Shown here: positions 4,287 through 57,042 of the stretch, one piece after another | Layout: every line of letters starts with the position of its first letter | Numbering within the stretch: position 1 is the stretch's first letter | IMG/VR virus record: IMGVR_UViG_3300031884_000002 | Location: 62,001 to 126,000 of that record | Direction: 5' to 3' (one strand) | DNA length: 64,000 bases | The notes under the pieces: generated by a model | Told to the model about the DNA's origin: nothing | Database searches by the model: none | What the model saw: the letters and a program-made list of their open reading frames with translations, nothing else | Program-made: the position numbers and the translations under genes

Positions 4287-6665
4287 TTAAGCCGTAACTA
4301 ATTCTTCCGGTTGAATATCAACTAAATCAACTACATCGGTTTTAACTGTTTCCGTATATTCATTATATAAATCAATCGACTTGATATATTTTACAAAATT
4401 ATTACGACTAATTTCATTATTGAGTGAACCATTTCTCATATTATGCCAATTAATATAAGGATAGATTTTAATGATTTCATTTTTAATATCTTCAATATTA
4501 ACCGTTGGTTTAATTCCTTTAACAAAATTACACCAAATATAAAGTTGTTGAATAGCATCAATAAATCCAGTTGTATCTTTATTTTTATTAAGAGAAAAAG
4601 AAGTATTAAACAATTTAATCAATACATGATTATCACCTAATTCTTTAGTTAGAAGTTCAGCCTCTTCAATGTTAATAACCGAAGTATCGGCATATTGATT
4701 AACCAAATCTTGAGGATTAATATTGGATGATATACTTTCTACAATAAACTTATCCAGCGGCAACCAAGTTTTATTTTCAATAGCATTCTCAAACCATTTG
4801 GCACCAGCGGTAATACTATCAATAATATAAACCCTCTCAATATCCAAGTTCAATTTATCATTGATAGTTTTAATATATCCCATCACATCACTAACATAGA
4901 TTTCATTATCATTAAACTTGATTTTATTTCCACGAAAATAATTCTTACGTCCACGTTTACTTGGTGCTTTATATAGAAAATAAACGTCTTCATCAATATC
5001 TTTAAATGCAACATCGGACTCTTCAACCTCTTCCGATACAAAATCCATATATTCCATCTTACGAATAACCGAAGTCCAACTACCACCCGAACGAGTTCCT
5101 TTATTAGCAGAATACCAAACCTTGGCATCGGCCAACAAATCGGATAGATTTAGAGTCGGCACAGTATCAAAATTATATTCTTTATAGAATGCAGATTTAA
5201 TATTATTGGTTTCAAAGTTCAATACATGAATAATCTTATATTGATAATTTTTAGAAAATAACAAATACCGCATAACCATAGCCATTCCGCTTCTCTTATT
5301 GGTATCGTTAATAACAACTCCAACCTTATCGGATGCTGTAATTCCATTATAAACATTAGATTTGCATTTAAAAGTTTTAATCCGGTTCTTCTTGGGACGA
5401 TAAGTAGTCATTACTGGAGCATATGGATTATAATCTTTTCCATCAAGGTTGTCCGAAGATAATGCATTATCAAATCGATTAATATGTCTAAAAGAAGCAT
5501 CTGTAATTGGAATACCATTCCAAATAAGTTGTCCCTTCAACGTATCTTCCAATTTAGATAAATTACCAGCCAAGATTTTAATATTATCAATGGCAATACT
5601 GCCATCTTCCGTTTCAATCGGCAAACCACTTCCGAAAATAGAATTATATATTTTCTTTGCTTCCCAGATATTAAAAGCATTGGAAAACTTTTCCTGCACT
5701 GATTCCTTGATTTTGACAATAATATCTTCAATTTTAGAAATTAAAGCCTCCAATGTCAATTTGGAATATTCTAATGCCTCTCTCGAAGGAACAAATTCCA
5801 AATCACCCATTTTATATTTTAAAACTAAATCATTAGAATGAAGCAAATCCAATAAAGCACGGCTCTTACTATCAATCGGCAATTGGTTGGAAATTTTATT
5901 AAAATCCAAGGGGTAAGAAACGTTTCCCATGTAAGCCACCGCAACCGCAGCATATCCAGATTTGGGACGAATTTCCCAACCATCACCTTTCAAGGTGGCT
6001 GGAGTAGTCCTGAATTTATCAATTTGTAATTGATATTCATCATTCAGATTAACGAGTTGAGGAAGCATTTCCCAATATTTAAAATAATTAGCGGCTTCCT
6101 GATGAATATCATACATCATTTCACTTTTAATAGGAATACAAACTTCAATGCCGGTAGGTTCATCAGAAACAATACGAGCCATTTCATAAATTTGAGGAAG
6201 TTTAGTTTTATCTCCCTTAATAATTTGATAAATTGCCTTTTCTCCTTTATTCCAAGAAGTAACTGTCATAGAATCACTTACACATTGAAAAGATTTTGAT
6301 CCAAATCCCCACGAACCATTAAAATCATTGGAATTTCTACGTGTAGATGTTCCCATATTACAATAAATTTTAACAATTTCCTCGGCATTCAATCCAGCAC
6401 CAAAATCTCGGAATTTAAGTGTCAAATCATTATATACAGGCAATGTAACTATAAAATCAGAAATTGGCTTCTTGGCTTCAATATGAGCGTCAAAAGCATT
6501 GTTAGCATATTCCCTCACAACTGCCAATTCTTTCTTGGAATACATTTTATCAGATAGACAATCCATAATTCTGGCTCTCTCAGCAGCATCAAAATCAACT
6601 TGTCCAATAAGTTTTACACCGGAACCATTCGTTTCAATCGTCTGTTGTGTTTCGTTGGATATCAT
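4287..6665 (-). CDS. rIIA: rIIA-like protein (N-terminal GHKL/Hsp90-like ATPase)
   Basis: REYANNAFDAH, RDFGAGL, STRRNSNDFNGSWGFGSKS and PSREALEY motifs; paired with rIIB. Confidence 0.88.
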   Translation of the reverse strand: MISNETQQTIETNGSGVKLIGQVDFDAAERARIMDCLSDKMYSKKELAVVREYANNAFDAHIEAKKPISDFIVTLPVYNDLTLKFRDFGAGLNAEEIVKIYCNMGTSTRRNSNDFNGSWGFGSKSFQCVSDSMTVTSWNKGEKAIYQIIKGDKTKLPQIYEMARIVSDEPTGIEVCIPIKSEMMYDIHQEAANYFKYWEMLPQLVNLNDEYQLQIDKFRTTPATLKGDGWEIRPKSGYAAVAVAYMGNVSYPLDFNKISNQLPIDSKSRALLDLLHSNDLVLKYKMGDLEFVPSREALEYSKLTLEALISKIEDIIVKIKESVQEKFSNAFNIWEAKKIYNSIFGSGLPIETEDGSIAIDNIKILAGNLSKLEDTLKGQLIWNGIPITDASFRHINRFDNALSSDNLDGKDYNPYAPVMTTYRPKKNRIKTFKCKSNVYNGITASDKVGVVINDTNKRSGMAMVMRYLLFSKNYQYKIIHVLNFETNNIKSAFYKEYNFDTVPTLNLSDLLADAKVWYSANKGTRSGGSWTSVIRKMEYMDFVSEEVEESDVAFKDIDEDVYFLYKAPSKRGRKNYFRGNKIKFNDNEIYVSDVMGYIKTINDKLNLDIERVYIIDSITAGAKWFENAIENKTWLPLDKFIVESISSNINPQDLVNQYADTSVINIEEAELLTKELGDNHVLIKLFNTSFSLNKNKDTTGFIDAIQQLYIWCNFVKGIKPTVNIEDIKNEIIKIYPYINWHNMRNGSLNNEISRNNFVKYIKSIDLYNEYTETVKTDVVDLVDIQPEELVTA

Positions 6666-6748
6666 AATTTAATAATTTGTTATGCTCCAAGAATATAGAT
6701 TTTAGATTAAAAGTCAATGAAAATATTTTCGATTTTTGTAATGTTACG

Positions 6749-7270
6749 TTTATTTATTTTGACTACCTTAATTAAGAATATTAACGAAGACATCGCCAAT
6801 CCCCCGAAATACTCAAAATATCCTTTATTTATTTTGACAGCGGCAATCGCAGAGCAACTGAATACCGATGGAGTCCCCGAAATACTAAAAATATCCTTTA
6901 TTTATTTTGACTCAATTGAAGAACTTGGTAATCCATAAAGATTTACACCCCGAAATACTCAAAATATCATTTATTTATTTTGACATTCGATATTTAAGGT
7001 CCTCAATATCAAGGTCATACCCGAAATACTCAAAATATCCTTTATTTATTTTGACATGATATGGGAGATTAAAAGTAATCTGGCTCCAGTTCCCGAAATA
7101 CTCAAAATATCCTTTATTTATTTTGACTTTATATTCCAGCCTAATGATTTTAATCGATCAATCCCGAAATACTCAAAATATCCTTTATTTATTTTGACCA
7201 ATTGCTCCATTCATATATTAATAAGGGAGTAGTACCCGAAATACTCAAAATATCCTTTATTTATTTTGAC
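6749..7270. CRISPR. CRISPR array 1: 7 full 36-bp repeats plus 1 partial, 7 spacers of 35-39 bp
   Basis: CCCGAAATACTCAAAATATCCTTTATTTATTTTGAC at 6803, 6876, 6949, 7020, 7092, 7163 and 7235 (two copies with single substitutions); partial copy at 6749-6763; internal stem TCAAAATA/TATTTTGA; unique spacers. Confidence 0.98.
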
Positions 7271-7459
7271 AGCCTTCCCGTAAAGGGTTTATTGTCAACT
7301 ATTTAAAAGGCTTTCCACGAGCGGCTATATCAGAAAAGATATAACCTAACTCATGCTAGGCATGTCGGATGCCTAAATATTTGTCAAAGAACAACTTACA
7401 TCTTGCGAGCGGTTATGCGTAACTATCTCATCACCACACCGCTCGCAAGAAAAATTAAA
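7271..7459. promoter_or_regulatory. CRISPR leader / possible scaffold RNA region
   Basis: Non-coding; 13-bp perfect inverted repeat TCTTGCGAGCGGT (7401-7413)/(7438-7450); third CGAGCGG copy at 7318-7324; 7-bp hairpin at 7357-7375. Confidence 0.7.
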
Positions 7460-7639
7460 TTACCATCCTCTACGTTTATTTTGACTACAAAGTTTTTTAT
7501 AATTCAACTCTTCTTCATTGGTTAATCTCCAATATGTAGCCCCCTCTATTCGTTTTTCTCGATGTTTTTTTTCAACAAAGGAATGAGCGTCTCTAAGAAT
7601 ATTATTTTTTATTTCTGTTTTATTTCTTCTGTGTCGCAT
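7460..7639 (-). CDS. 59-aa basic ORF overlapping the effector 3' end (below the ORF-track cutoff)
   Basis: Hand translation MRHRRNKTEIKNNILRDAHSFVEKKHREKRIEGATYWRLTNEEELNYKKLCSQNKRRGW*. Confidence 0.5.
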   Translation of the reverse strand: MRHRRNKTEIKNNILRDAHSFVEKKHREKRIEGATYWRLTNEEELNYKKLCSQNKRRGW

Positions 7640-8973
7640 AATGTAAACACCATACCTCGTGATTCAATGTTATTTTTTAAAGTAGATTTAAACTTGAACC
7701 AAGGGAATTCACCGGCTAATTTAAATCCTTTTGTTGTGTTTAGTACAATTTCATTACAACAAGTTCTTTCGGCGTGTTTACATAACATAGCTACAGTTTG
7801 TTTAATAAAAGCATCGGTTCTTTTTTCAAAATTGTTAGCGACAACTGCTGATTTGCTATTAAAACACGAAACATTCCCAGAACGACGTTCACATTTTCTA
7901 TCCTGTGAAAACCTATCAATATATTCTCTTCTTTTTTCTGACAAATGAACTCCATAATCCTCAGATAAAATTGATTGGAGTTCTTTTAATTTATTTTCTG
8001 GAATATGAGGATATAATTCTTTAACTGTATTAGCATCTAATACTTTGGATAATAATATCTTTTCCTCGGCTACCCATCTGTTAATATTATCTGCGTTATA
8101 CACTTGGAACTTTCTACCACCAACCCACATAGCAAGAAAAGTATCAGGGGCAGTAAATAACATCATTGTTCTATTATTTTTTTTGTCTAAAAGAGAACGT
8201 GGTTGTTTTACTACAATTTTAACTTTATAAGCAGCTTTTTGTTTGTTCCCATTATCATCTCGTTGAGTGATAGTATGATGATGAACTCCTCCTACTCGTT
8301 CACGAACAATCGCACAACTTCCCCATTTAGCATTTCCTTCCATTATTGCTTTCAAGTTTCCATGCTCTCTGCCAAAATTATCACCTCCCGCCAATCTTAA
8401 TTGAATTCTATTATTTATTCTTCCGCATCCAATTACAAATTCTATTACATAAGCAATAGACCCACAAGTATTTAACACTTTTATATCACAAGCCACAGAA
8501 GGTATTTCTAATGGTTGTCCTTCTTTATAGAAGGGTTGATTTTCCCGCCCAAGAAACACAAGCAACTTCTTTTTATTAAATAATTTAGTAATTTTATTCT
8601 GAAGAGTCGATGCGATTACTGATGATGGAATTAAAGGAAATAATTTCCGTGCTTCATTATAAATTTTCTTTTGTAGGGCATTATATTTTTCCTTAGATGG
8701 AGAAACATATTTTTCATCCAATCCACTTTTAACTGGTTCGCTCTTAAACAAGGATGATAACGCCCAATTATGAAACAAATCGTTTTGCTTAAATAATTCA
8801 TCTAATCGAGAATCAACTTCTTTCCATTCCATATTAAGAGGTTCTGCAATAGGTAGGGTAATGGAAAATACATTACTTACAGTATCCGCTGTAAACGCAT
8901 ATGGCTTGGGTTCCTGCCATAGCCAACCATCTCGAAGTTCGAGCAACCCTTTTTTATTTACTTCAAATTTCAT
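7609..8973 (-). CDS. Cas12f/TnpB-like type V effector, predicted nuclease-dead
   Basis: Adjacent to the array. YNEARKLFPLIPSS resembles the in-window TnpB segment YKIKELFPTLPSQ. GRENQPFYKEGQPLEIP and IMEGNAKWGSCAI resemble Cas12f WED/REC segments. RuvC-I position reads MLFTAPD (no IDLG) and RuvC-II reads IVLNTT (no E). FPWFKFKSTLKNNIESRG is followed by the stop, with no Zn finger or RuvC-III. Confidence 0.75.
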   Translation of the reverse strand: MKFEVNKKGLLELRDGWLWQEPKPYAFTADTVSNVFSITLPIAEPLNMEWKEVDSRLDELFKQNDLFHNWALSSLFKSEPVKSGLDEKYVSPSKEKYNALQKKIYNEARKLFPLIPSSVIASTLQNKITKLFNKKKLLVFLGRENQPFYKEGQPLEIPSVACDIKVLNTCGSIAYVIEFVIGCGRINNRIQLRLAGGDNFGREHGNLKAIMEGNAKWGSCAIVRERVGGVHHHTITQRDDNGNKQKAAYKVKIVVKQPRSLLDKKNNRTMMLFTAPDTFLAMWVGGRKFQVYNADNINRWVAEEKILLSKVLDANTVKELYPHIPENKLKELQSILSEDYGVHLSEKRREYIDRFSQDRKCERRSGNVSCFNSKSAVVANNFEKRTDAFIKQTVAMLCKHAERTCCNEIVLNTTKGFKLAGEFPWFKFKSTLKNNIESRGMVFTLCDTEEIKQK

Positions 8974-9860
8974 AACATTAAGGATTTAAGACCTTTATCG
9001 ATTTTATCCAATGGAATATAATCAACCGGACTACTATTAAAATTTACAATTGTTCCATTCGTAATATGATAAACATCAACTTGACTTAAATTTTTATAAG
9101 TTGAAATATATGCAAATCCGTGTTGCCATGCATTGGCACGCCCACCTTTAGTAGCAAATTCCGGAGAAAGATTACATAAACATCCAATCGACCACGACCA
9201 CATAATATCTTTATCTCCCGCTTCATTGATACGATTTCGTTTACTAAAATCTTTATAAGTAATAGCATGACTATCCGCATGAACAACTCTATGATTTTGC
9301 ATCATATATTGAGTTTCACTAAGTCCATTGCCATGCATAACATAGACATCTCCAACTTCATATATTGGACGAATAGAGCCTCCATTCCAAGGAATATAAG
9401 TTATATTAAGTTCTTTCCATATGGAACATTTACGAATACTTATACCATCTCCAAAACTTCGAAGCAAATCATTTTTTCTTAATTCAAATTCGGAACGATA
9501 TTCGTGATTACCTTCGATAAAAATAATTTCAGCATTGGGCACAAACTTACGAATAACACGGAGAAATTCTTTTCCCATATTAAGAGTTTCTTTCCACGCA
9601 GAAAAATGATATTCTCCATCGTCAGTCATAATCAATCCTCCCTTATTTATTTTAGCAGTCCATCCAGAGCACTGTTGATTATCAAACATATCTCCCATAA
9701 TAATAACTCTATCAGCACCATATTTTTTAATAATCTGCATCAATGGAGACAATGCAACTGGATCATGACGGCAATCTGGCAATTTAACCTTTCCATCTAC
9801 TAACAATGCTGCTTGAAGATGTAAATCTGGAATTGTAATTGTTGTCTCTAATTTATTCAT
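8970..9860 (-). CDS. calcineurin-like metallophosphoesterase
   Basis: PDLH, GDMFD and EGNHE motifs; ATGA overlap with the effector start. Confidence 0.85.
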   Translation of the reverse strand: MNKLETTITIPDLHLQAALLVDGKVKLPDCRHDPVALSPLMQIIKKYGADRVIIMGDMFDNQQCSGWTAKINKGGLIMTDDGEYHFSAWKETLNMGKEFLRVIRKFVPNAEIIFIEGNHEYRSEFELRKNDLLRSFGDGISIRKCSIWKELNITYIPWNGGSIRPIYEVGDVYVMHGNGLSETQYMMQNHRVVHADSHAITYKDFSKRNRINEAGDKDIMWSWSIGCLCNLSPEFATKGGRANAWQHGFAYISTYKNLSQVDVYHITNGTIVNFNSSPVDYIPLDKIDKGLKSLML

Positions 9861-9869
9861 TATTGAAGG

Positions 9870-9898
9870 AGTATATCAGGTTAATAAAAAAATGTCAA
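9870..9898 (-). promoter_or_regulatory. promoter of the phosphoesterase-effector operon (TTGACA-N17-TATACT)
   Basis: Near-consensus hexamers 9 nt before the ATG at 9860. Confidence 0.8.
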
Positions 9899-10456
9899 TA
9901 ATTTATTCGGGCACTATTTTAACGGTGACTTTTCCCGGTTGGGTAAGAAAACCTTCATTATGAAGATAATAAATAAAATCGGCACAGAACTCTTTTCGCT
10001 CATATCCTTCAAGTCCTAACATAGTCCAAGGATGATTACCATATATCGTAATTGCATTTCCATCTATTTTGAACTTTATATTGCGTAAGTTCATTTATAT
10101 CTTAACAATATCCTCATAATGATTATTACATTCGGCCTCTTTAATATAACGTTTAGCGGTTCGGTGTCGAGATTCATCTGGAAACTTTCTAATTACAGAA
10201 TACAATAATTCATTATAATTGTCAAGTAAGTTTTTAACGCAACGATGACACATCCAATATTCTGTTTTATTAGGTTCTCCTAAGTTTAAACAACCTACAG
10301 TAGTCCATTTGCATACAGAACAAGTTGGATTTGTTTTATTACAGACTTCATTTATTAAATCAGTCGGTGTAACTTTATTCATATTTTTAAAGAAACGTTT
10401 AAAATCATCAACCTCTTCATCAATTGCATTGTTATCCAAATCGTTATATTTATAAT

Positions 10457-29237: not shown

Positions 29238-30242
29238 TGTTATTATAAAATTAAAGAATTATTTCCAACTCTCCCATCTCAATTTATTATAAAAATGGAG
29301 CAAGATGTTATTTCAACGTATAAATCCATAAAATCTAATAAACATAAACTGGAGTTTCCGGCTATTAAAAAATCATTATCCATTCAACTTGACAAGCGTA
29401 TCTATAAGTGGATAGACAGGAACCATATAAAAATCACCACTCTAAATAAACAAGCAATCTGTTCTTTTAATGCTTATAATAAATTAAAAGAGATGGACTT
29501 TTCTAAATTAAAAGACCCAAAATTGTTTTATAAAAATAAACAATTTTACTTGTCCTTGATATTTGATGATAATAAACAATTTACTGATAATAACAAAGTA
29601 TTAGGAATTGACTTAGGATTAAAACGAATAGCAACATTAAGCAATGGAATTATATTCAAAGGAAACGAGTTTAACAAACATAAACGTAAAATTAGATGGA
29701 ATAAACGTAAATTACAATCCAAGAAAAATAATTCTCATTCTGCTCGTAAAAAATTAAAATCATTAAGAAGAAAAGAAACCAATTTTAGTAAAAATTACAT
29801 ACATAATTTAACAAAAAATATAATTATAAATAATAAAGAAAATATTTTAGTAATCGAAGATTTAAGTAAAATTAAAGTTAAGAACAAAGGAAAGAGATTT
29901 AACAATCGGTTAAGTCAATTACCATTTTTTAATTTTAGAACCATACTAACATACAAGGCACAACTATATGGAAAAATAGTTGAAACGGTTAACCCTGCTT
30001 ACACCAGTCAAATAGACCATAGAGGATTGACAAGTGGAACACGTAGAGGATGTAGATATTATGGTTCAGACGGAACAATGTTAGATGCCGATGTAAATGC
30101 GGCACTAAATATTGGAAATCGGTATAAAGATAATAAATCTTTAACCAAACACTCCATTTCGTGCTGTAAAGTACTTGATGGACAGGTGAACGTCAACTCA
30201 CCAATCGTCTCTATCAGTCAGAGGCAAGCACCGACCCTTTAG
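29238..30242 (+). pseudogene. tnpB: 5'-truncated TnpB (IS200/IS605 family)
   Basis: GIDLG, IEDL, YTSQ and DADVNAALNI. Homology to the 46660 TnpB extends upstream of the ATG at 29295 (CYYKIKELFPTLPSQ) to a TAA at 29235, so about 45 N-terminal aa are missing. Confidence 0.8.
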
Positions 30243-46659: not shown

Positions 46660-47799
46660 CTAAAGGGATAGGTGCTTGAACGGCCCCGAGGAGCGGGACT
46701 TATATTCGTATGGCGTATTGACTGACGCCTGCCCATAAGTCAGATTTGTGGTCTGTGATACGGGATGTTTGGACATTTTTCCAATGTTGATAGCAGCATT
46801 GATGTCCGAGTCATATATCATTCCATTTACTTTAGAGTAAAATCTACAACCTCTTCTTTCACCTTCGACTTTACCCGTTACCGAGTCTCGTTGTGATGTA
46901 TAGGAAGGGCAAACAAACAGAACAGTTTTACCTTGGTTCTGTGCCTTATAGGTTATTACTCTACGGAGTTCAAACATTGGAACTTGTGATATACTTCTTT
47001 TATTTTGGTATTTGTGTTTCTTTCTTTTTATGCTCTTGAGGTTTTCAAGACAAATTGTATCGGCTTCCGTTCGGAGAACGGCATTGGAAATTAGATGGGT
47101 TTGGTTCTTGTTCTTGTTTCGTTCTTTTCTTCGTAACGAATAACGAAGTTTCCTACGGGCACTCTTCGTTCCCTTGGATTTGAGTTTGTCTTTCAAGTAT
47201 CTCAATCTTCGTTTTTCACCGTTGAACTTCTTATCAATAATAAGTCGCCCATCCGAACAAGCAGCACTCCTACGGATGCCGATGTCCACTCCTAATGCCA
47301 ATCGTTGTTTGAGTTTTTCAACTTTGTTTTCAAAAGAGAAAGCGATACATACTTTATCATTATCCACATATATTAGAGGGTCTTGGTATGCGTATTTTTC
47401 CATCAACTCTTTCAGTCGTGGATAGACAACAAACTTGAAGGTCTGTCGTTTTCCTGTGGTCGTGATGCGAATAGAAAACTTATCTGGGATTGAGTAAAGT
47501 CGTTTATCCAATCTCATTGAGAGGTTCTTTTTTACAATGAGAGTTTTCTTATGCTTATTGGATTTCGCAGACCGATAGGAAGCAAGAACTTCTTGTTCTG
47601 CTTTGATTATTACTTGGGATGGGATTTCTGGATTTGACTTACGAACATTTTTATACACTTTGGAGTGAAGAACTACAAGAGAGTTCTTTGTTTCTGGTAG
47701 TTGTTCCTTGGAAGCAAGGTTGAATACAAACCTTTCGTATTCAAGCAACTTTTTCAGTTCTTGACAATCTCCTAAAAGTGTGGTATTGTAACTCAACAT
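46660..47799 (-). CDS. tnpB: TnpB RNA-guided nuclease (Zn-finger-less)
   Basis: GVDIG, LENL, YTSQ and DSDINAAINI. Confidence 0.92.
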   Translation of the reverse strand: MLSYNTTLLGDCQELKKLLEYERFVFNLASKEQLPETKNSLVVLHSKVYKNVRKSNPEIPSQVIIKAEQEVLASYRSAKSNKHKKTLIVKKNLSMRLDKRLYSIPDKFSIRITTTGKRQTFKFVVYPRLKELMEKYAYQDPLIYVDNDKVCIAFSFENKVEKLKQRLALGVDIGIRRSAACSDGRLIIDKKFNGEKRRLRYLKDKLKSKGTKSARRKLRYSLRRKERNKNKNQTHLISNAVLRTEADTICLENLKSIKRKKHKYQNKRSISQVPMFELRRVITYKAQNQGKTVLFVCPSYTSQRDSVTGKVEGERRGCRFYSKVNGMIYDSDINAAINIGKMSKHPVSQTTNLTYGQASVNTPYEYKSRSSGPFKHLSL

Positions 47800-48278
47800 A
47801 GTTTTAGATTTTTGGATATTTTTTGTATTCGTGAAAGGAATTCGTTATCATCAAAATATGATTTTAACATATTACATCCCTTACAGCAAACTACACAGTT
47901 TTCTTTTGTATAACCAATTTTATTATTTTTCCTATCTAAATTATAAGCACAGGTGGCACCTACCTTTCGATATGGTTCCCATTTAACTAATTCCCCACAA
48001 TAATGACAATTGGAAATTTTTGTTAATTCAAGAAATTCATCAAAAGTTAAATCTACAATAATATTTTTCGTTCTATGTTTTTGAGAATTTAGAAGAAAAT
48101 TATATAAGGAACGAAAGGGAGGCAAATGCCGTTGTTTATTTCTCATTGTTTCTCTTGTTTTTTCGGTCAATATTTCAATTTCTCCGTTTTTATAAAGAAT
48201 ACAAAAACAATCACGACACCAATTAGACCGCACGTCTTTTTCTTTTCCACATTTACAAAAATTTCTCTTGTGTTTCAT
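47793..48278 (-). CDS. HNH-like endonuclease inside the IS
   Basis: CHYCG...LDRKNNKIGYTKENCVVCC..CN..K. Confidence 0.75.
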   Translation of the reverse strand: MKHKRNFCKCGKEKDVRSNWCRDCFCILYKNGEIEILTEKTRETMRNKQRHLPPFRSLYNFLLNSQKHRTKNIIVDLTFDEFLELTKISNCHYCGELVKWEPYRKVGATCAYNLDRKNNKIGYTKENCVVCCKGCNMLKSYFDDNEFLSRIQKISKNLKLC

Positions 48279-55774: not shown

Positions 55775-57042
55775 GTGAATGCTCCCAACCTCTAAAGAGG
55801 TTGGGCTTCTATCCTAACTTGCGTTAGAAAAAGAGTCCATTCCGACTCTTAAAATATTTCTTGCAGCATTCAAATCCCTACCAATGTTAAGATTACAAAT
55901 AGGACATTTGTGTTGTCTTTCTGACAACTCTTTCTTAACAATGGTTCCGCATCCCGAGCATATTTGGGTCGTGTATCGTGGGTCAACATTTACTACTTCA
56001 CAGCCAGCTTCTACCGCTTTACTATGGAGCATTTGTCTAAATGCTGCCCAACCCGAGTCCAATATGCTTCTATTCAACGCTCGCCAATTGTCATTCAACA
56101 TTTGGCTTGGTCGAATATCTTCCACACAAATATGAGAATACTCGTTCACTAGTTTCTTGCTCAACTTGTGTAGGAAATCTTTTCGTTGGTTCTTCACTCT
56201 ACAATGGAGTTTAACCAATTCTCTCTTGGTCTTTATCTTCGTCTTGTCATCCTTCGGTTTAAGTTTCAGTTTGGAATACTTACCTTGGACTTTGGAAAGT
56301 TTCTCCTGTGATTGTTTAAGAAAATGAGGATTAGGAATAGTGGTTCCATCCGAACAGGTCACAAAGTCAATACATCCAACATCAATCCCAACTGCTCGTT
56401 TCCATTTTCGTTTTTCAATCTTCACTTCAACTTCACACGAGAAAATAGCATACCAATGTGTGCCTTCACGCTTAATGGTCAAGGTCTTTACCTTGCCTTC
56501 CATTGGTCGGTGGAAGTTAATACGAACGTCTCCAATCTTGGACATCCACATTTTCTTCTTTCCTATCTTAAATCCTGTCTGTGGAAAGGTGAAGGAGTCA
56601 TACCGGTCATAGGACTTAAAGCGTGGGAAACCTGCTTTTCCACTCTTATCCTTCAATCTGCGGAAGAACCCAAGATAGGCAAGGTCAAGTCGGGCAGATA
56701 CGTTTTGGAGGACTTGCGAATGGACTGGAGTTTTCAGTTCCATATCCTTAATTATTTTACAACAATCAAAGTGAGTTAAAGTTTTCTTGGTCTTCTTGTA
56801 GTGGTCGTTTCGCTTCTCAAGGAGTTGGTTATAAACGTAGCGACAAGTATTCAGCGTCTCTTGGAGACGGATAGCACTGCCTCCTTTGGGAGACAATTTG
56901 AACTTGTAATTGCGTTTTACTTTCATTCTATAACATACATATCATCCACTTTAAGGAAAATGTTATTTTATTTCTGTTTCCTTAATATGGTCGTCATTCA
57001 TCCCCTTGGCTAAAGCCGAAGGGGCTTTCTGACTCCAAAAAT
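55775..57042 (-). mobile_element. IS1341-like element (tnpB only)
   Basis: Minus-strand left end TTAC|...AAAG-hairpin ccccttcggctttagccaagggg; right end GAAG-hairpin cccaacctctttagaggttggg...TCAC. Confidence 0.88.
55814..56926 (-). CDS. tnpB: canonical TnpB with HTH and Zn ribbon
   Basis: YKFKLSP, GFPRFK, GIDVG, VEDI, CSGC...CPIC and RDLNAARNI. Confidence 0.96.
   Translation of the reverse strand: MKVKRNYKFKLSPKGGSAIRLQETLNTCRYVYNQLLEKRNDHYKKTKKTLTHFDCCKIIKDMELKTPVHSQVLQNVSARLDLAYLGFFRRLKDKSGKAGFPRFKSYDRYDSFTFPQTGFKIGKKKMWMSKIGDVRINFHRPMEGKVKTLTIKREGTHWYAIFSCEVEVKIEKRKWKRAVGIDVGCIDFVTCSDGTTIPNPHFLKQSQEKLSKVQGKYSKLKLKPKDDKTKIKTKRELVKLHCRVKNQRKDFLHKLSKKLVNEYSHICVEDIRPSQMLNDNWRALNRSILDSGWAAFRQMLHSKAVEAGCEVVNVDPRYTTQICSGCGTIVKKELSERQHKCPICNLNIGRDLNAARNILRVGMDSFSNAS

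Follow-up and report, generated by a model that had tools for sequence, protein, structure and literature searches.

A 354-kb lake-water phage genome (353,772 bp; 100% complete according to CheckV) carries a small CRISPR module, located on the minus strand at positions 6728-9898 of the window, by which we mean the whole 64-kb stretch of this genome that was analysed (Table 1). In the direction of transcription, the module consists of a promoter, a metallophosphoesterase (MPE) gene, a gene for a 454-aa effector, a 59-aa ORF, a scaffold RNA and the array. The promoter sequence is the best site within 6600-10200 and lies 10 nt upstream of the MPE gene, while the total number of promoter-like sites in the region is no higher than in shuffled sequences. 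Repeat, ORF and promoter analyses all agree with the original prediction of a 7-spacer array beside a 454-aa ORF in an operon, and the reported lack of cas1, cas2 and cas4 in the 64 kb could be extended, as no Cas1, Cas2 or Cas4 was found in the complete 353,772-bp genome. No match to a sigma factor or HTH gene was obtained among the module neighbours (MPE, 59-aa ORF and rIIA), no transposase or transposon ends were seen at the module, and a megablast search of the phage region against GenBank phages returned no match.

Table 1. Features of the CRISPR module and their coordinates in the window
Feature	Position	Strand	Details
Sigma-70-like promoter	9870..9898	-	TTGACA-17-TATACT with TG; 11/12 positions matched; consensus match only
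Calcineurin-like MPE	8970..9860	-	296 aa; first module gene; Pfam PF00149 Metallophos, E 7.8e-6; phrog_221, 6e-17
Cas12f-fold effector (predicted)	7609..8973	-	454 aa; without TNB zinc finger and RuvC-III; N412 at RuvC-II glutamate position
Basic ORF	7460..7639	-	59 aa; overlaps effector 3' end by 31 nt
Scaffold RNA, tracrRNA/omega-RNA-like	7271..7448	-	~180 nt; runs directly into first repeat
Anti-repeat	7293..7298	-	UUGACA; predicted to pair with first repeat nucleotides, 7266-7271
CRISPR array	6728..7270	-	7 intact 36-nt repeats, 1 degenerate distal repeat, 7 spacers
Intact repeats (starts)	7270, 7198, 7127, 7055, 6984, 6911, 6838	-	spacing 71-73 nt
Degenerate eighth repeat	6763-6728	-	first 15 nt only preserved
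Spacers 1-7	7234-7199, 7162-7128, 7091-7056, 7019-6985, 6948-6912, 6875-6839, 6802-6764	-	35-39 nt each
Spacer 4	6985..7019	-	protospacer on 645-nt contig, lake run X2; 35 nt, 2 mismatches
Spacer 7	6764..6802	-	protospacer on same 645-nt contig, opposite strand; 37 nt aligned, 5 mismatches

The array shows the regular, near-identical direct repeats and the unique spacers of similar length by which CRISPR arrays are recognised. Its intact repeat (GTCAAAATAAATAAAGGATATTTTGAGTATTTCGGG) varies by at most one mismatch among the seven copies, all seven spacers are unique, and the array received TRF scores of 279 and 375. The degenerate repeat is found at the array end far from the effector. The repeat is located 5' of the spacer, which is the order of type V systems. 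Between lineages the repeat sequence varies, with a hairpin and a 3' UUCGGG tail retained in each. Spacer content also differs between relatives: L001 and L002 have distal spacers in common and differ in the effector-proximal ones, and L006 and L009 have no common spacer. Spacer turnover is thereby combined with foreign-derived spacers (spacers 4 and 7, discussed below), as in a CRISPR array. Irregular short spacers were also noticed in some relatives.

Between the 59-aa ORF and the array, where a leader had been proposed, we instead found that ~7271-7448 is a structured RNA, supported by covariation and fused to the first repeat. All lineages keep this scaffold, with a column identity of 69-79% compared with effector identities down to 46%. 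RNAalifold and pair counts gave 45 scaffold pairs with 94% of cells paired, compared with 35-41% in slid controls; 19 of these pairs have compensatory changes, the folding z-score is -6.9, and the G-U pairs are consistent with the effector-sense strand only. The anti-repeat, which is contiguous with repeat 1 as part of the scaffold, is predicted to form a covarying 6-bp helix with the 5' end of the repeat; in the 7 loci compared, 6/6 of its pairs vary on both sides, with 97.6% of cells paired. An Rfam scan of 6500-10000 matched no family, and the scaffold motif was absent from GTDB genomes; therefore no host or prophage was identified. The position of the scaffold is TnpB-like, since it is overlapped by the effector ORF in L008 and by a small ORF in L026. 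Instead of the single guide and transposon context of TnpB and its omega-RNA, a full repeat and an array follow the scaffold here. Extra scaffold-repeat units occur elsewhere in the genomes of relatives.

The AF2 model of the effector (pLDDT 85.5, replacing an earlier model from 5 sequences with pLDDT 61) and structure comparison support the proposed Cas12f/TnpB-like fold with WED, REC and a RuvC core. The best structural and profile matches are type V-F Cas12f proteins (AsCas12f 7wju/8j12, OsCas12f 9nzq, Un1Cas12f 7c7l), and the WED/REC segment aligns to Cas12f. The REC helix that had been likened to an in-window TnpB is indeed present in both proteins, as LFPLIPSS in the effector and LFPTLPSQ in the TnpB at 29238-30242. 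A phmmer search of the PDB with the single effector sequence had no match and only a 120-sequence profile succeeded (OsCas12f 1.8e-19, Fta dCas12f 1e-12); by E-values alone, which do not imply a common clade, the effector is no closer to Fta dCas12f than to active Cas12f.

Towards the C-terminus, the effector alignment to AsCas12f ends near residue 371-373 of ~422, and that to the phage's own TnpBs breaks off immediately ahead of the zinc finger and DADxNAA motif of these TnpBs. At the position of the catalytic glutamate in Cas12f and in the TnpBs of this phage, the effector has N412, so the asparagine at this position and the end of the protein before the zinc finger and RuvC-III both stand as originally described. 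No Pfam family matched the effector, and PF07282 (zinc finger) matches six other genes of the genome, not the effector. RuvC-I is without a GxDxG motif, T274 ending strand beta1 and D277 following three residues later; in hhalign comparisons with a single TnpB or a profile of 6 TnpBs, the alignment was limited to the REC helix or the RuvC-II region, and RuvC-I therefore could not be mapped. The complete RuvC D-E-D triad is thus absent. From sequence and model, the effector is predicted to be unable to cut DNA with its own RuvC site, because the zinc finger and RuvC-III are lost and asparagine replaces the RuvC-II glutamate. Some residual or unconventional catalysis may be possible, with RuvC-I unaligned, D277 placed after beta1, and position 412 being D in two lineages (L008/P0004 and L026) and N or D among close lineages.

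The module is found in six lineages with 46-79% effector identity, in which the order MPE, effector, scaffold and array is retained. These lineages have only the module in common: their flanks are unrelated, and tblastx of 6 kb of window flank on each side against the other lineage loci detected no similarity. All three module proteins are under purifying selection (dN/dS 0.08-0.3). An array lies beside every homolog whose downstream sequence was readable, and the MPE is next to the effector in 6/6 lineages. Neither a fold lacking WED, REC and RuvC nor homologs without arrays, the computable observations that would speak against the original prediction, were encountered.

The MPE is a strictly co-inherited part of the module. 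It lies directly upstream of the effector in 6/6 lineages, its stop codon overlapping the effector start (ATGA) in the window and either overlapping it or leaving a gap of at most 8 nt across lineages. Its Pfam score is 26.9 bits against a cut-off of 21.5, and the metal-binding motifs D12-x-H14, G56-D57, G117-N118-H119, H176 and H198, which correspond to the DxH, GD, GNH(E/D), H and H of PF00149, do not vary in 4 lineages. A search of 5.8 billion proteins placed 8 of them in the MPE clade, the six closest of which all adjoin an effector; the dN/dS of the MPE is ~0.3. Weak family matches were to PdeM (3.5e-6) and an SbcD-related family (8e-4); a solved relative was not found by sequence. On the other hand, the MPEs of phages belong to a very common family that could act on many substrates, the identities of MPE and effector do not run in parallel (MPE 71% where the effector has 53%, 44% where it has 79%), and the distant effector relatives P0007, P0008, P0013 and P0044 have no MPE neighbour. 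Adjacency through mere phage synteny was rejected because the flanks are unrelated between loci, and a 298-aa gene upstream of P0008 was rejected as an MPE as it shows no similarity. The MPE may supply cleavage in trans.

The protein encoded by the 59-aa ORF is conserved in 4/6 lineages (window, L006, L009, L026) at 52-59 aa with a dN/dS of 0.16-0.27, is absent in L001 and L008, and had no family match. We considered it as the missing effector C-terminus, through a frameshift or split gene, and rejected this: it has one cysteine, no DxDxNAA-like motif and an unconserved D.

As for the targets, a low-abundance contig sampled in the phage's own lake carries matches to spacers 4 and 7. The spacer 4 match ends exactly at the spacer borders and the contig is without the repeat; the two protospacers lie ~350 nt apart, within open reading frames on one contig strand. 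Since the two spacers match an ORF of a same-lake contig, we consider the target to be foreign DNA. Their position on opposite strands of one ORF fits DNA rather than RNA targeting and, with n = 2, agrees no less well with destruction or a block of replication than with a block of transcription. No match was found for the five other spacers in the databases searched, nor for the spacers in the phage's own 354-kb genome, GenBank phages or PLSDB plasmids. In IMG/VR, window spacers 1 and 2 had no match and the first spacers of L001 and L002 had no target, the L001 pattern matching its own array only. Similarly, the two known flanks of the target contig had no match in IMG/VR, its wobble-tolerant pattern had none in JGI metagenomes or GTDB genomes, and its two peptide fragments had no homolog in the phage.

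With modest confidence, we take the module to be most likely an RNA-guided binder of foreign DNA that blocks a competing element. It would be a miniature type V CRISPR module, self-contained and lacking adaptation genes, in a jumbo phage; a single promoter would drive the MPE, the 454-aa Cas12f-fold protein and the 59-aa basic protein, with the scaffold and 7-spacer array downstream on the same strand. The WED, REC and RuvC core of the effector would hold guide RNA and target DNA, the guide presumably being composed of scaffold, repeat-derived handle and spacer, an arrangement supported by covariation and probably reached by processing of the transcript. The complex would then bind complementary dsDNA of a foreign element from the phage's lake and interfere through site occupancy, presumably blocking transcription or replication in the manner of Cas12m, TldR and dCas12f, with the MPE as a co-inherited accessory and with spacers presumably acquired through host machinery. 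As regards the original prediction of an RNA-guided, silencing DNA binder, it is supported in part: the fold, the lost catalysis, the array linkage and the foreign-ORF spacers speak for it, while silencing by binding is what we infer.

One observation is at odds with a pure binder, which would not need a conserved partner enzyme: the MPE, with intact metal-binding motifs, is there in 6/6 lineages. We therefore also weighed, as a possible if somewhat doubtful explanation, a two-component interference in which the dead Cas12f-like protein finds the target and the MPE, recruited to the R-loop, degrades the DNA; Cascade recruits Cas3 in a parallel way. Several properties of the MPE are in line with such a role, namely its place as first gene in every lineage despite unrelated flanks, its overlap or near-contact with the effector start, its small, effector-bound clade, its invariant metal-binding residues, its low dN/dS, and its weak matches to nuclease types, with a distant relation to SbcD/Mre11-type enzymes; protospacers on both strands of one gene fit as well. 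Against it stand the uncoupled identities of MPE and effector, the four distant relatives lacking the MPE, the commonness and many possible substrates of phage MPEs, and the failure to find a solved relative by sequence. At its widest, this explanation becomes a proposal that we put forward only tentatively: a two-part type V system, with a dead Cas12f derivative for targeting, the MPE as trans nuclease, and a guide RNA that would preserve a stage midway from a single omega-RNA to a split tracrRNA plus array, as suggested by the fusion of the scaffold with repeat 1 and by the additional scaffold-repeat units in the genomes of relatives.

The remaining explanations seem to us improbable to differing degrees. 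A gene regulator resembling TldR or dCas12f-sigmaE, guided to host or phage promoters during infection, would agree with the role as transcription factors of the nearest truncated relatives that have been characterised (PMC13472631, PMC10705468), and omega-RNA-type relatives without arrays are found on other mobile elements. We nonetheless judge it unlikely: the phage's own 354-kb genome contains no spacer match, spacer turnover between close relatives is not what fixed regulatory guides would show, both matched protospacers are inside an ORF of a low-abundance contig rather than a promoter, and there is no adjacent sigma factor or HTH gene. More unlikely still is that the effector has remained a nuclease, working through a non-canonical active site or on RNA. 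Candidate residues would be D277, D295, D358 and E362, and D295, D358, K360, E362 and R364 are indeed at least 90% conserved across 120 family members; moreover, TnpB and Cas12 include known examples in which the RuvC site is rearranged yet active (PMC10691335). However, the entire C-terminal segment with RuvC-III and the zinc finger is missing, position 412 varies between N and D among close lineages, and the structurally equivalent dCas12f has been described as nuclease-dead (PMC13472631). Least probable of all is a remnant in decay, or a decoy that titrates host crRNAs without a targeting function of its own; the absent adaptation genes and the irregular short spacers of some relatives would be in keeping with it, but the three genes are under strong purifying selection, compensatory changes maintain the RNA structure, spacer sets differ between relatives and two spacers match a co-occurring element.

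The favoured reading, a binder of foreign DNA, can be set against systems already described. Dead Cas12f homologs with a truncated C-terminus have been reported, among them a cluster that adjoins CRISPR arrays and has covarying ncRNAs upstream (PMC10691335, PMC13472631), and truncated dCas12f binds DNA under RNA guidance (PMC13472631). The suggestion of an undescribed type V variant was consequently overstated, since such homologs were reported in 2023 and 2026; what we did not find for dead Cas12f in the literature searched are a phage context, a link to an MPE and a scaffold fused to the array. With dCas12f (PDB 9n9c/9n9m; Hoffmann et al. 2026, PMC13472631; Altae-Tran et al. 2023, PMC10691335) the effector shares a truncated Cas12f-like fold: residues 29-446 of the model align to the entire chain 9n9c_A (1-365), and, as in this inactivated Cas12f-derived clade, a C-terminal truncation removes RuvC-III. 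In contrast, dCas12f has an operonic rpoE (ECF sigma) and/or HTH partner, both lacking in the phage module, which for its part resides in jumbo phages, is strictly linked to an MPE, encodes the 52-59-aa protein in 4/6 lineages and has a full array of 35-39-nt spacers. Type V-F Cas12f is similar in having a miniature WED-REC-RuvC effector beside an array and a multi-stem scaffold RNA with a putative anti-repeat, but here the effector is without the zinc finger (TNB) and RuvC-III, has N for the RuvC-II glutamate, and the scaffold continues into the first repeat and does not form a tracrRNA gene apart from it. Like Cas12m (type V-M), the phage effector would be carried by a mobile element and interfere by binding without cutting, the mode proposed here, while the fold, size and retained RuvC and zinc finger of Cas12m are not those of our effector. 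TldR is a truncated, RuvC-dead TnpB-type protein whose scaffold-plus-guide RNA starts at the 3' end of its own gene region or inside that end; it differs in its one fixed omega-RNA guide, direct TnpB origin and host-gene regulation (PMC10705468), compared with an array with spacer turnover and a Cas12f-like fold in the phage module. Some TldRs are prophage-encoded. CasPhi/Cas12j and CasLambda also occur in huge phages, without adaptation genes and with short arrays presumed to act against competitors (PMC11656645).

If the effector binds without cutting, it would be a naturally evolved programmable DNA binder of 454 aa, carried by a phage together with its scaffold RNA and array, and thus both a useful compact targeting module and evidence for phage use of dead CRISPR effectors against rivals. 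We know of no earlier class 2 system that leaves recognition to a dead Cas12 and degradation to an unrelated nuclease recruited to the target; if the MPE is in fact the executor, this would be the first such split known to us. The locus also bears on the debated step from omega-RNA to tracrRNA plus CRISPR and makes this transition directly testable, because the scaffold has a single-guide form in distant relatives (L010, L011), while here it is predicted to pair with, and is fused to, repeat 1 of a real array.

The source of the module is a jumbo phage, represented by a single record of 353,772 bp (30% GC, 100% complete according to CheckV) that was detected in about 20 lake-water metagenome runs; the window corresponds to its bases 62001-126000. 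The original prediction of a promoter, a metallophosphoesterase (MPE), an effector, a small ORF and a CRISPR array proved accurate, coordinates included, and the absence of cas1, cas2 and cas4 reported with it holds for the whole genome, where no Cas1, Cas2 or Cas4 was found and the effector gene occurs once. The array's repeat is GTCAAAATAAATAAAGGATATTTTGAGTATTTCGGG, with at most one mismatch in each of the seven intact copies. Outside the window, a 33-nt stretch of the phage genome (G000:C1:230294-230326) shares 27 of its positions with the 3' part of the repeat (E 0.06), which at this GC content is probably chance. The homing endonuclease lies about 1.7 kb upstream of the module promoter on the opposite strand. 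Of the genome's six canonical TnpB genes, three fall in the window; their D-E-D motifs are conserved in alignment, and they are probably IS elements proliferating in the jumbo phage.

Features of the module and its surroundings in the window
Feature	Position	Strand	Remarks
rIIA homolog	4287-6665	-	
CRISPR array	ends 6728	-	seven 36-nt repeats, a degenerate eighth, 7 unique spacers of 35-39 nt
Non-coding stretch (scaffold RNA)	~7448-7271	-	
ORF, 59 aa	7639-7460	-	31-nt overlap with the 454-aa ORF
Effector ORF, 454 aa	8973-7609	-	start overlaps MPE stop
Calcineurin-like MPE, 296 aa	9860-8970	-	
Promoter-like site TTGACA-17-TATACT with extended TG	9898-9870	-	11/12 matches
GIY-YIG/HNH-type homing endonuclease, 394 aa	11628-12812	+	phrog_314, 4e-28
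Canonical TnpB with TNB zinc ribbon	29238-30242	+	
Canonical TnpB with TNB zinc ribbon	46660-47844	-	
Canonical TnpB with TNB zinc ribbon	55814-56941	-	

The effector had no match in Pfam, NCBIfam or PHROGs, and PADLOC assigned its residues 40-225 to Cas12u3 and Cas12f (E ~1e-9). A word-indexed search of 5.8 billion proteins returned only four relatives (79, 73, 53 and 46% identity), with a sixth lineage (56%) reached later through its MPE. Searching 1.8 billion cluster representatives with a profile yielded 617 relatives at E < 1e-3, mostly 380-460 aa long, about 20-25% identical and without a Pfam domain. From an alignment of 120 of these family sequences, AlphaFold2 produced a confident model (pLDDT 85.5, pTM 0.79) for which Foldseek ranked AsCas12f first (E 5e-19), bearing out the Cas12f/TnpB-like fold that had been proposed. 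The family profile also aligned with Cas12f sequences of the PDB over two blocks, one covering WED/REC and the other RuvC-II (best E 1.8e-19).

In the RuvC-II block, V-x-Y-D-D of the family aligns with I-Q-M-E-D of Cas12f and places N412 of the window effector on the catalytic glutamate; four close lineages have N at this position and two have D. The same register emerged when the profile was compared with one of the six canonical TnpBs encoded by the phage, an alignment that reaches the final residues of the effector and breaks off just short of the TnpB zinc finger and D-A-D-x-N-A-A. Structural alignments to AsCas12f stop near residue 371-373 of ~422. Sequence comparison gave no alignment of RuvC-I. 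The model's strand beta1 (268-273) ends in T274, threonine being the commonest residue there in the family, and D277 follows three residues later. The earlier motif statements were correct. With the RuvC-II glutamate replaced and both RuvC-III and the zinc finger missing, the effector very probably has no active RuvC site of its own. The protein is functional, given strong purifying selection (dN/dS 0.08-0.20). Conserved motifs are also present outside the canonical RuvC positions, namely N-A-D-H-V-R-R-W (residues 293-300) and D-x-K-x-E-x-R (358-364), with D295, D358, K360, E362 and R364 each at least 90% conserved among the 120 family members.

What separates the protein genes from the first repeat, previously taken for a leader, is instead a structured scaffold RNA. 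It is kept in every lineage at 69-79% column identity, while effector identity falls to 46%, and RNAalifold predicts seven helices in it. Across seven loci, 94% of cells are paired, a share that falls to 35-41% if the partners are shifted by 1-3 columns; a direct count gives compensatory changes on both sides in 19 of 45 pairs, and none of 500 shuffles matched any observed pairing measure. The window copy folds far better than its shuffles (z = -6.9), and its many G-U pairs are compatible with the effector-sense strand only. Rfam held no matching family.

The array has the effector's direction of transcription and is fused to the scaffold. Scaffold UUGACA (7298-7293) pairs with UGUCAA (7271-7266), which comprises the last scaffold nucleotide and the first five of the repeat; in all six pairs of this helix both partners vary between lineages (UUGACC/GGUCGA, UUGAGG/CCUCGA, GUCAGG/CCUGAC), with 97.6% of cells paired, and the UUGACA segment is a probable anti-repeat. 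Repeats vary in sequence between lineages, each retaining a 5-8-bp hairpin and a 3' tail that ends in UUCGGG next to the spacer. This invariant tail could form a pseudoknot with the CCGAC loop of the second hairpin, which is likewise invariant. In L008, one of the relatives' loci, the effector ORF runs at its end into the first scaffold stem, as in TnpB omega-RNAs, and in L026, another, the small ORF does so.

The MPE gene lies directly upstream of the effector in all six lineages, overlapping or at most 8 nt apart, and on every contig long enough to show them, scaffold and array come directly after the effector. The 6 kb on each side of the window module show no tblastx similarity (E < 1e-4) to the other lineages' loci, so ordinary phage synteny does not explain the linkage. 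The module is a unit of inheritance to which the MPE belongs. Its clade has eight members in 5.8 billion proteins, the six closest all beside an effector, and at its edge E drops from 5e-57 to 2e-20 into a large phage MPE family. The module's MPE, strictly co-inherited, has invariant metal-binding motifs and a dN/dS of ~0.3 and is apparently active. The nearest relative outside the module (32% identity; L028:5001-7713) sits on a 191-kb contig with no effector; its neighbours are an HNH homing-endonuclease-like ORF and a sigma factor of ECF type. The 59-aa basic ORF has no detectable family and is kept in four of the six lineages (dN/dS 0.16-0.27).

Contigs of four lake runs were compared with the array. 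A 645-nt contig of lake-water run X2, at depth 3.8 versus ~35 for the phage, matches spacer 4 over exactly its full length (35 nt, 2 mismatches) and, ~350 nt away on the opposite strand, 37 nt of spacer 7 (5 mismatches); it lacks the repeat sequence. Judged with their 3' flanks, both protospacers lie in open frames on one strand of the contig, and therefore one guide is sense and the other antisense to a single putative gene, which argues that the module recognises DNA rather than RNA and targets a co-occurring foreign element. The contig was not recovered from IMG/VR, JGI metagenomes or GTDB genomes, and no spacer matches the phage's own genome. Among relatives' loci, L001 and L002 have distal spacers in common and differ in the effector-proximal ones, and in L006 and L009 scaffold and repeat are almost the same but the spacers differ entirely; arrays thus acquire spacers, presumably with host enzymes. 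Irregular short spacers of 17-27 nt occur at L001:10117-10247, L002:2841-3004 and L009:2769-2826, among them an 18-nt spacer present in two to three copies, which suggests repeat-repeat recombination or imprecise acquisition.

We infer that the effector, probably dimeric as in published Cas12f structures, would assemble on the scaffold, a repeat-derived handle and a spacer, bind complementary DNA next to a PAM and interfere with a competing element. On balance we lean towards interference by occupancy, as for Cas12m, TldR and dCas12f, as the most likely reading. Its main rival, that the MPE degrades DNA at the site bound by the effector, arises because a pure binder would need no conserved enzyme partner; however, MPE and effector identities are not congruent across lineages and distant effector family members lack the MPE, and we consider it possible but doubtful.

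The other explanations carry less weight: regulation of host genes by the effector is unlikely, a non-canonical nuclease is quite improbable, and that the module is a relic or decoy would be very surprising.

The proposal of an undescribed type V variant went too far, since the kind of system is already known. A Cas12f-derived clade with RuvC-III lost has been described together with V-U groups, several in number, whose catalytic sites are altered (Altae-Tran et al., PMC10691335). A truncated dCas12f acting with sigma-E has been characterised by Hoffmann et al. (PMC13472631), who also mention a separate dCas12f cluster, possibly repressors, beside CRISPR arrays with a covarying ncRNA upstream of the array. 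In the literature searched, no paper joined metallophosphoesterase, type V, CRISPR and TnpB. Nor did we find there the jumbo-phage lineage, the obligatory MPE, the small protein, a scaffold fused to repeat 1 with a covarying anti-repeat, or extra scaffold-repeat units elsewhere in relatives' genomes, each of which may have been described earlier. The module is well supported, mechanistically suggestive and directly testable, but not categorically new.

A covariance model of the scaffold 3' domain also matches directly downstream of two distant effector genes (~23% identity), on the same strand: L010:6310-6416 (E 4.6e-4), on a phage contig that ends 13 nt past the match, and L011:7254-7359 (E 7e-3), in a Verrucomicrobiales MAG beside TraG and without an array. 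In L011 the closing helix is, by eye, immediately followed by a presumptive guide. Both appear to be omega-RNA-type relatives. The phage lineage would thus be the branch that carries arrays, within a larger family of truncated Cas12f/TnpB-like proteins with single guides that occur on phages and conjugative elements.

Extra guide units were observed as well. On the 1.4-kb contig L018, a further scaffold variant (1280-1459, 96.5 bits) runs into a repeat start, with nothing resembling an effector or MPE upstream. At L015:5880-6175 (also L016, L017 and L020-L022), an orphan unit without an adjacent effector consists of a different P1-like hairpin, scaffold from GUUGUUCUUUGA on (100% identical to L001), one repeat and then flank. 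Positions 1-1456 of L015 and L001 are 99.9% identical, reversed; extrapolating from this overlap, with no contig spanning both, the distance between the unit and the effector locus of the same phage type would be ~10-12 kb. In L002, a second array (7643-8062) starts ~4.5 kb further downstream than the first; it comes directly behind a DNA methylase gene and is preceded by the scaffold 3' half only (covariance model 75.5 bits).
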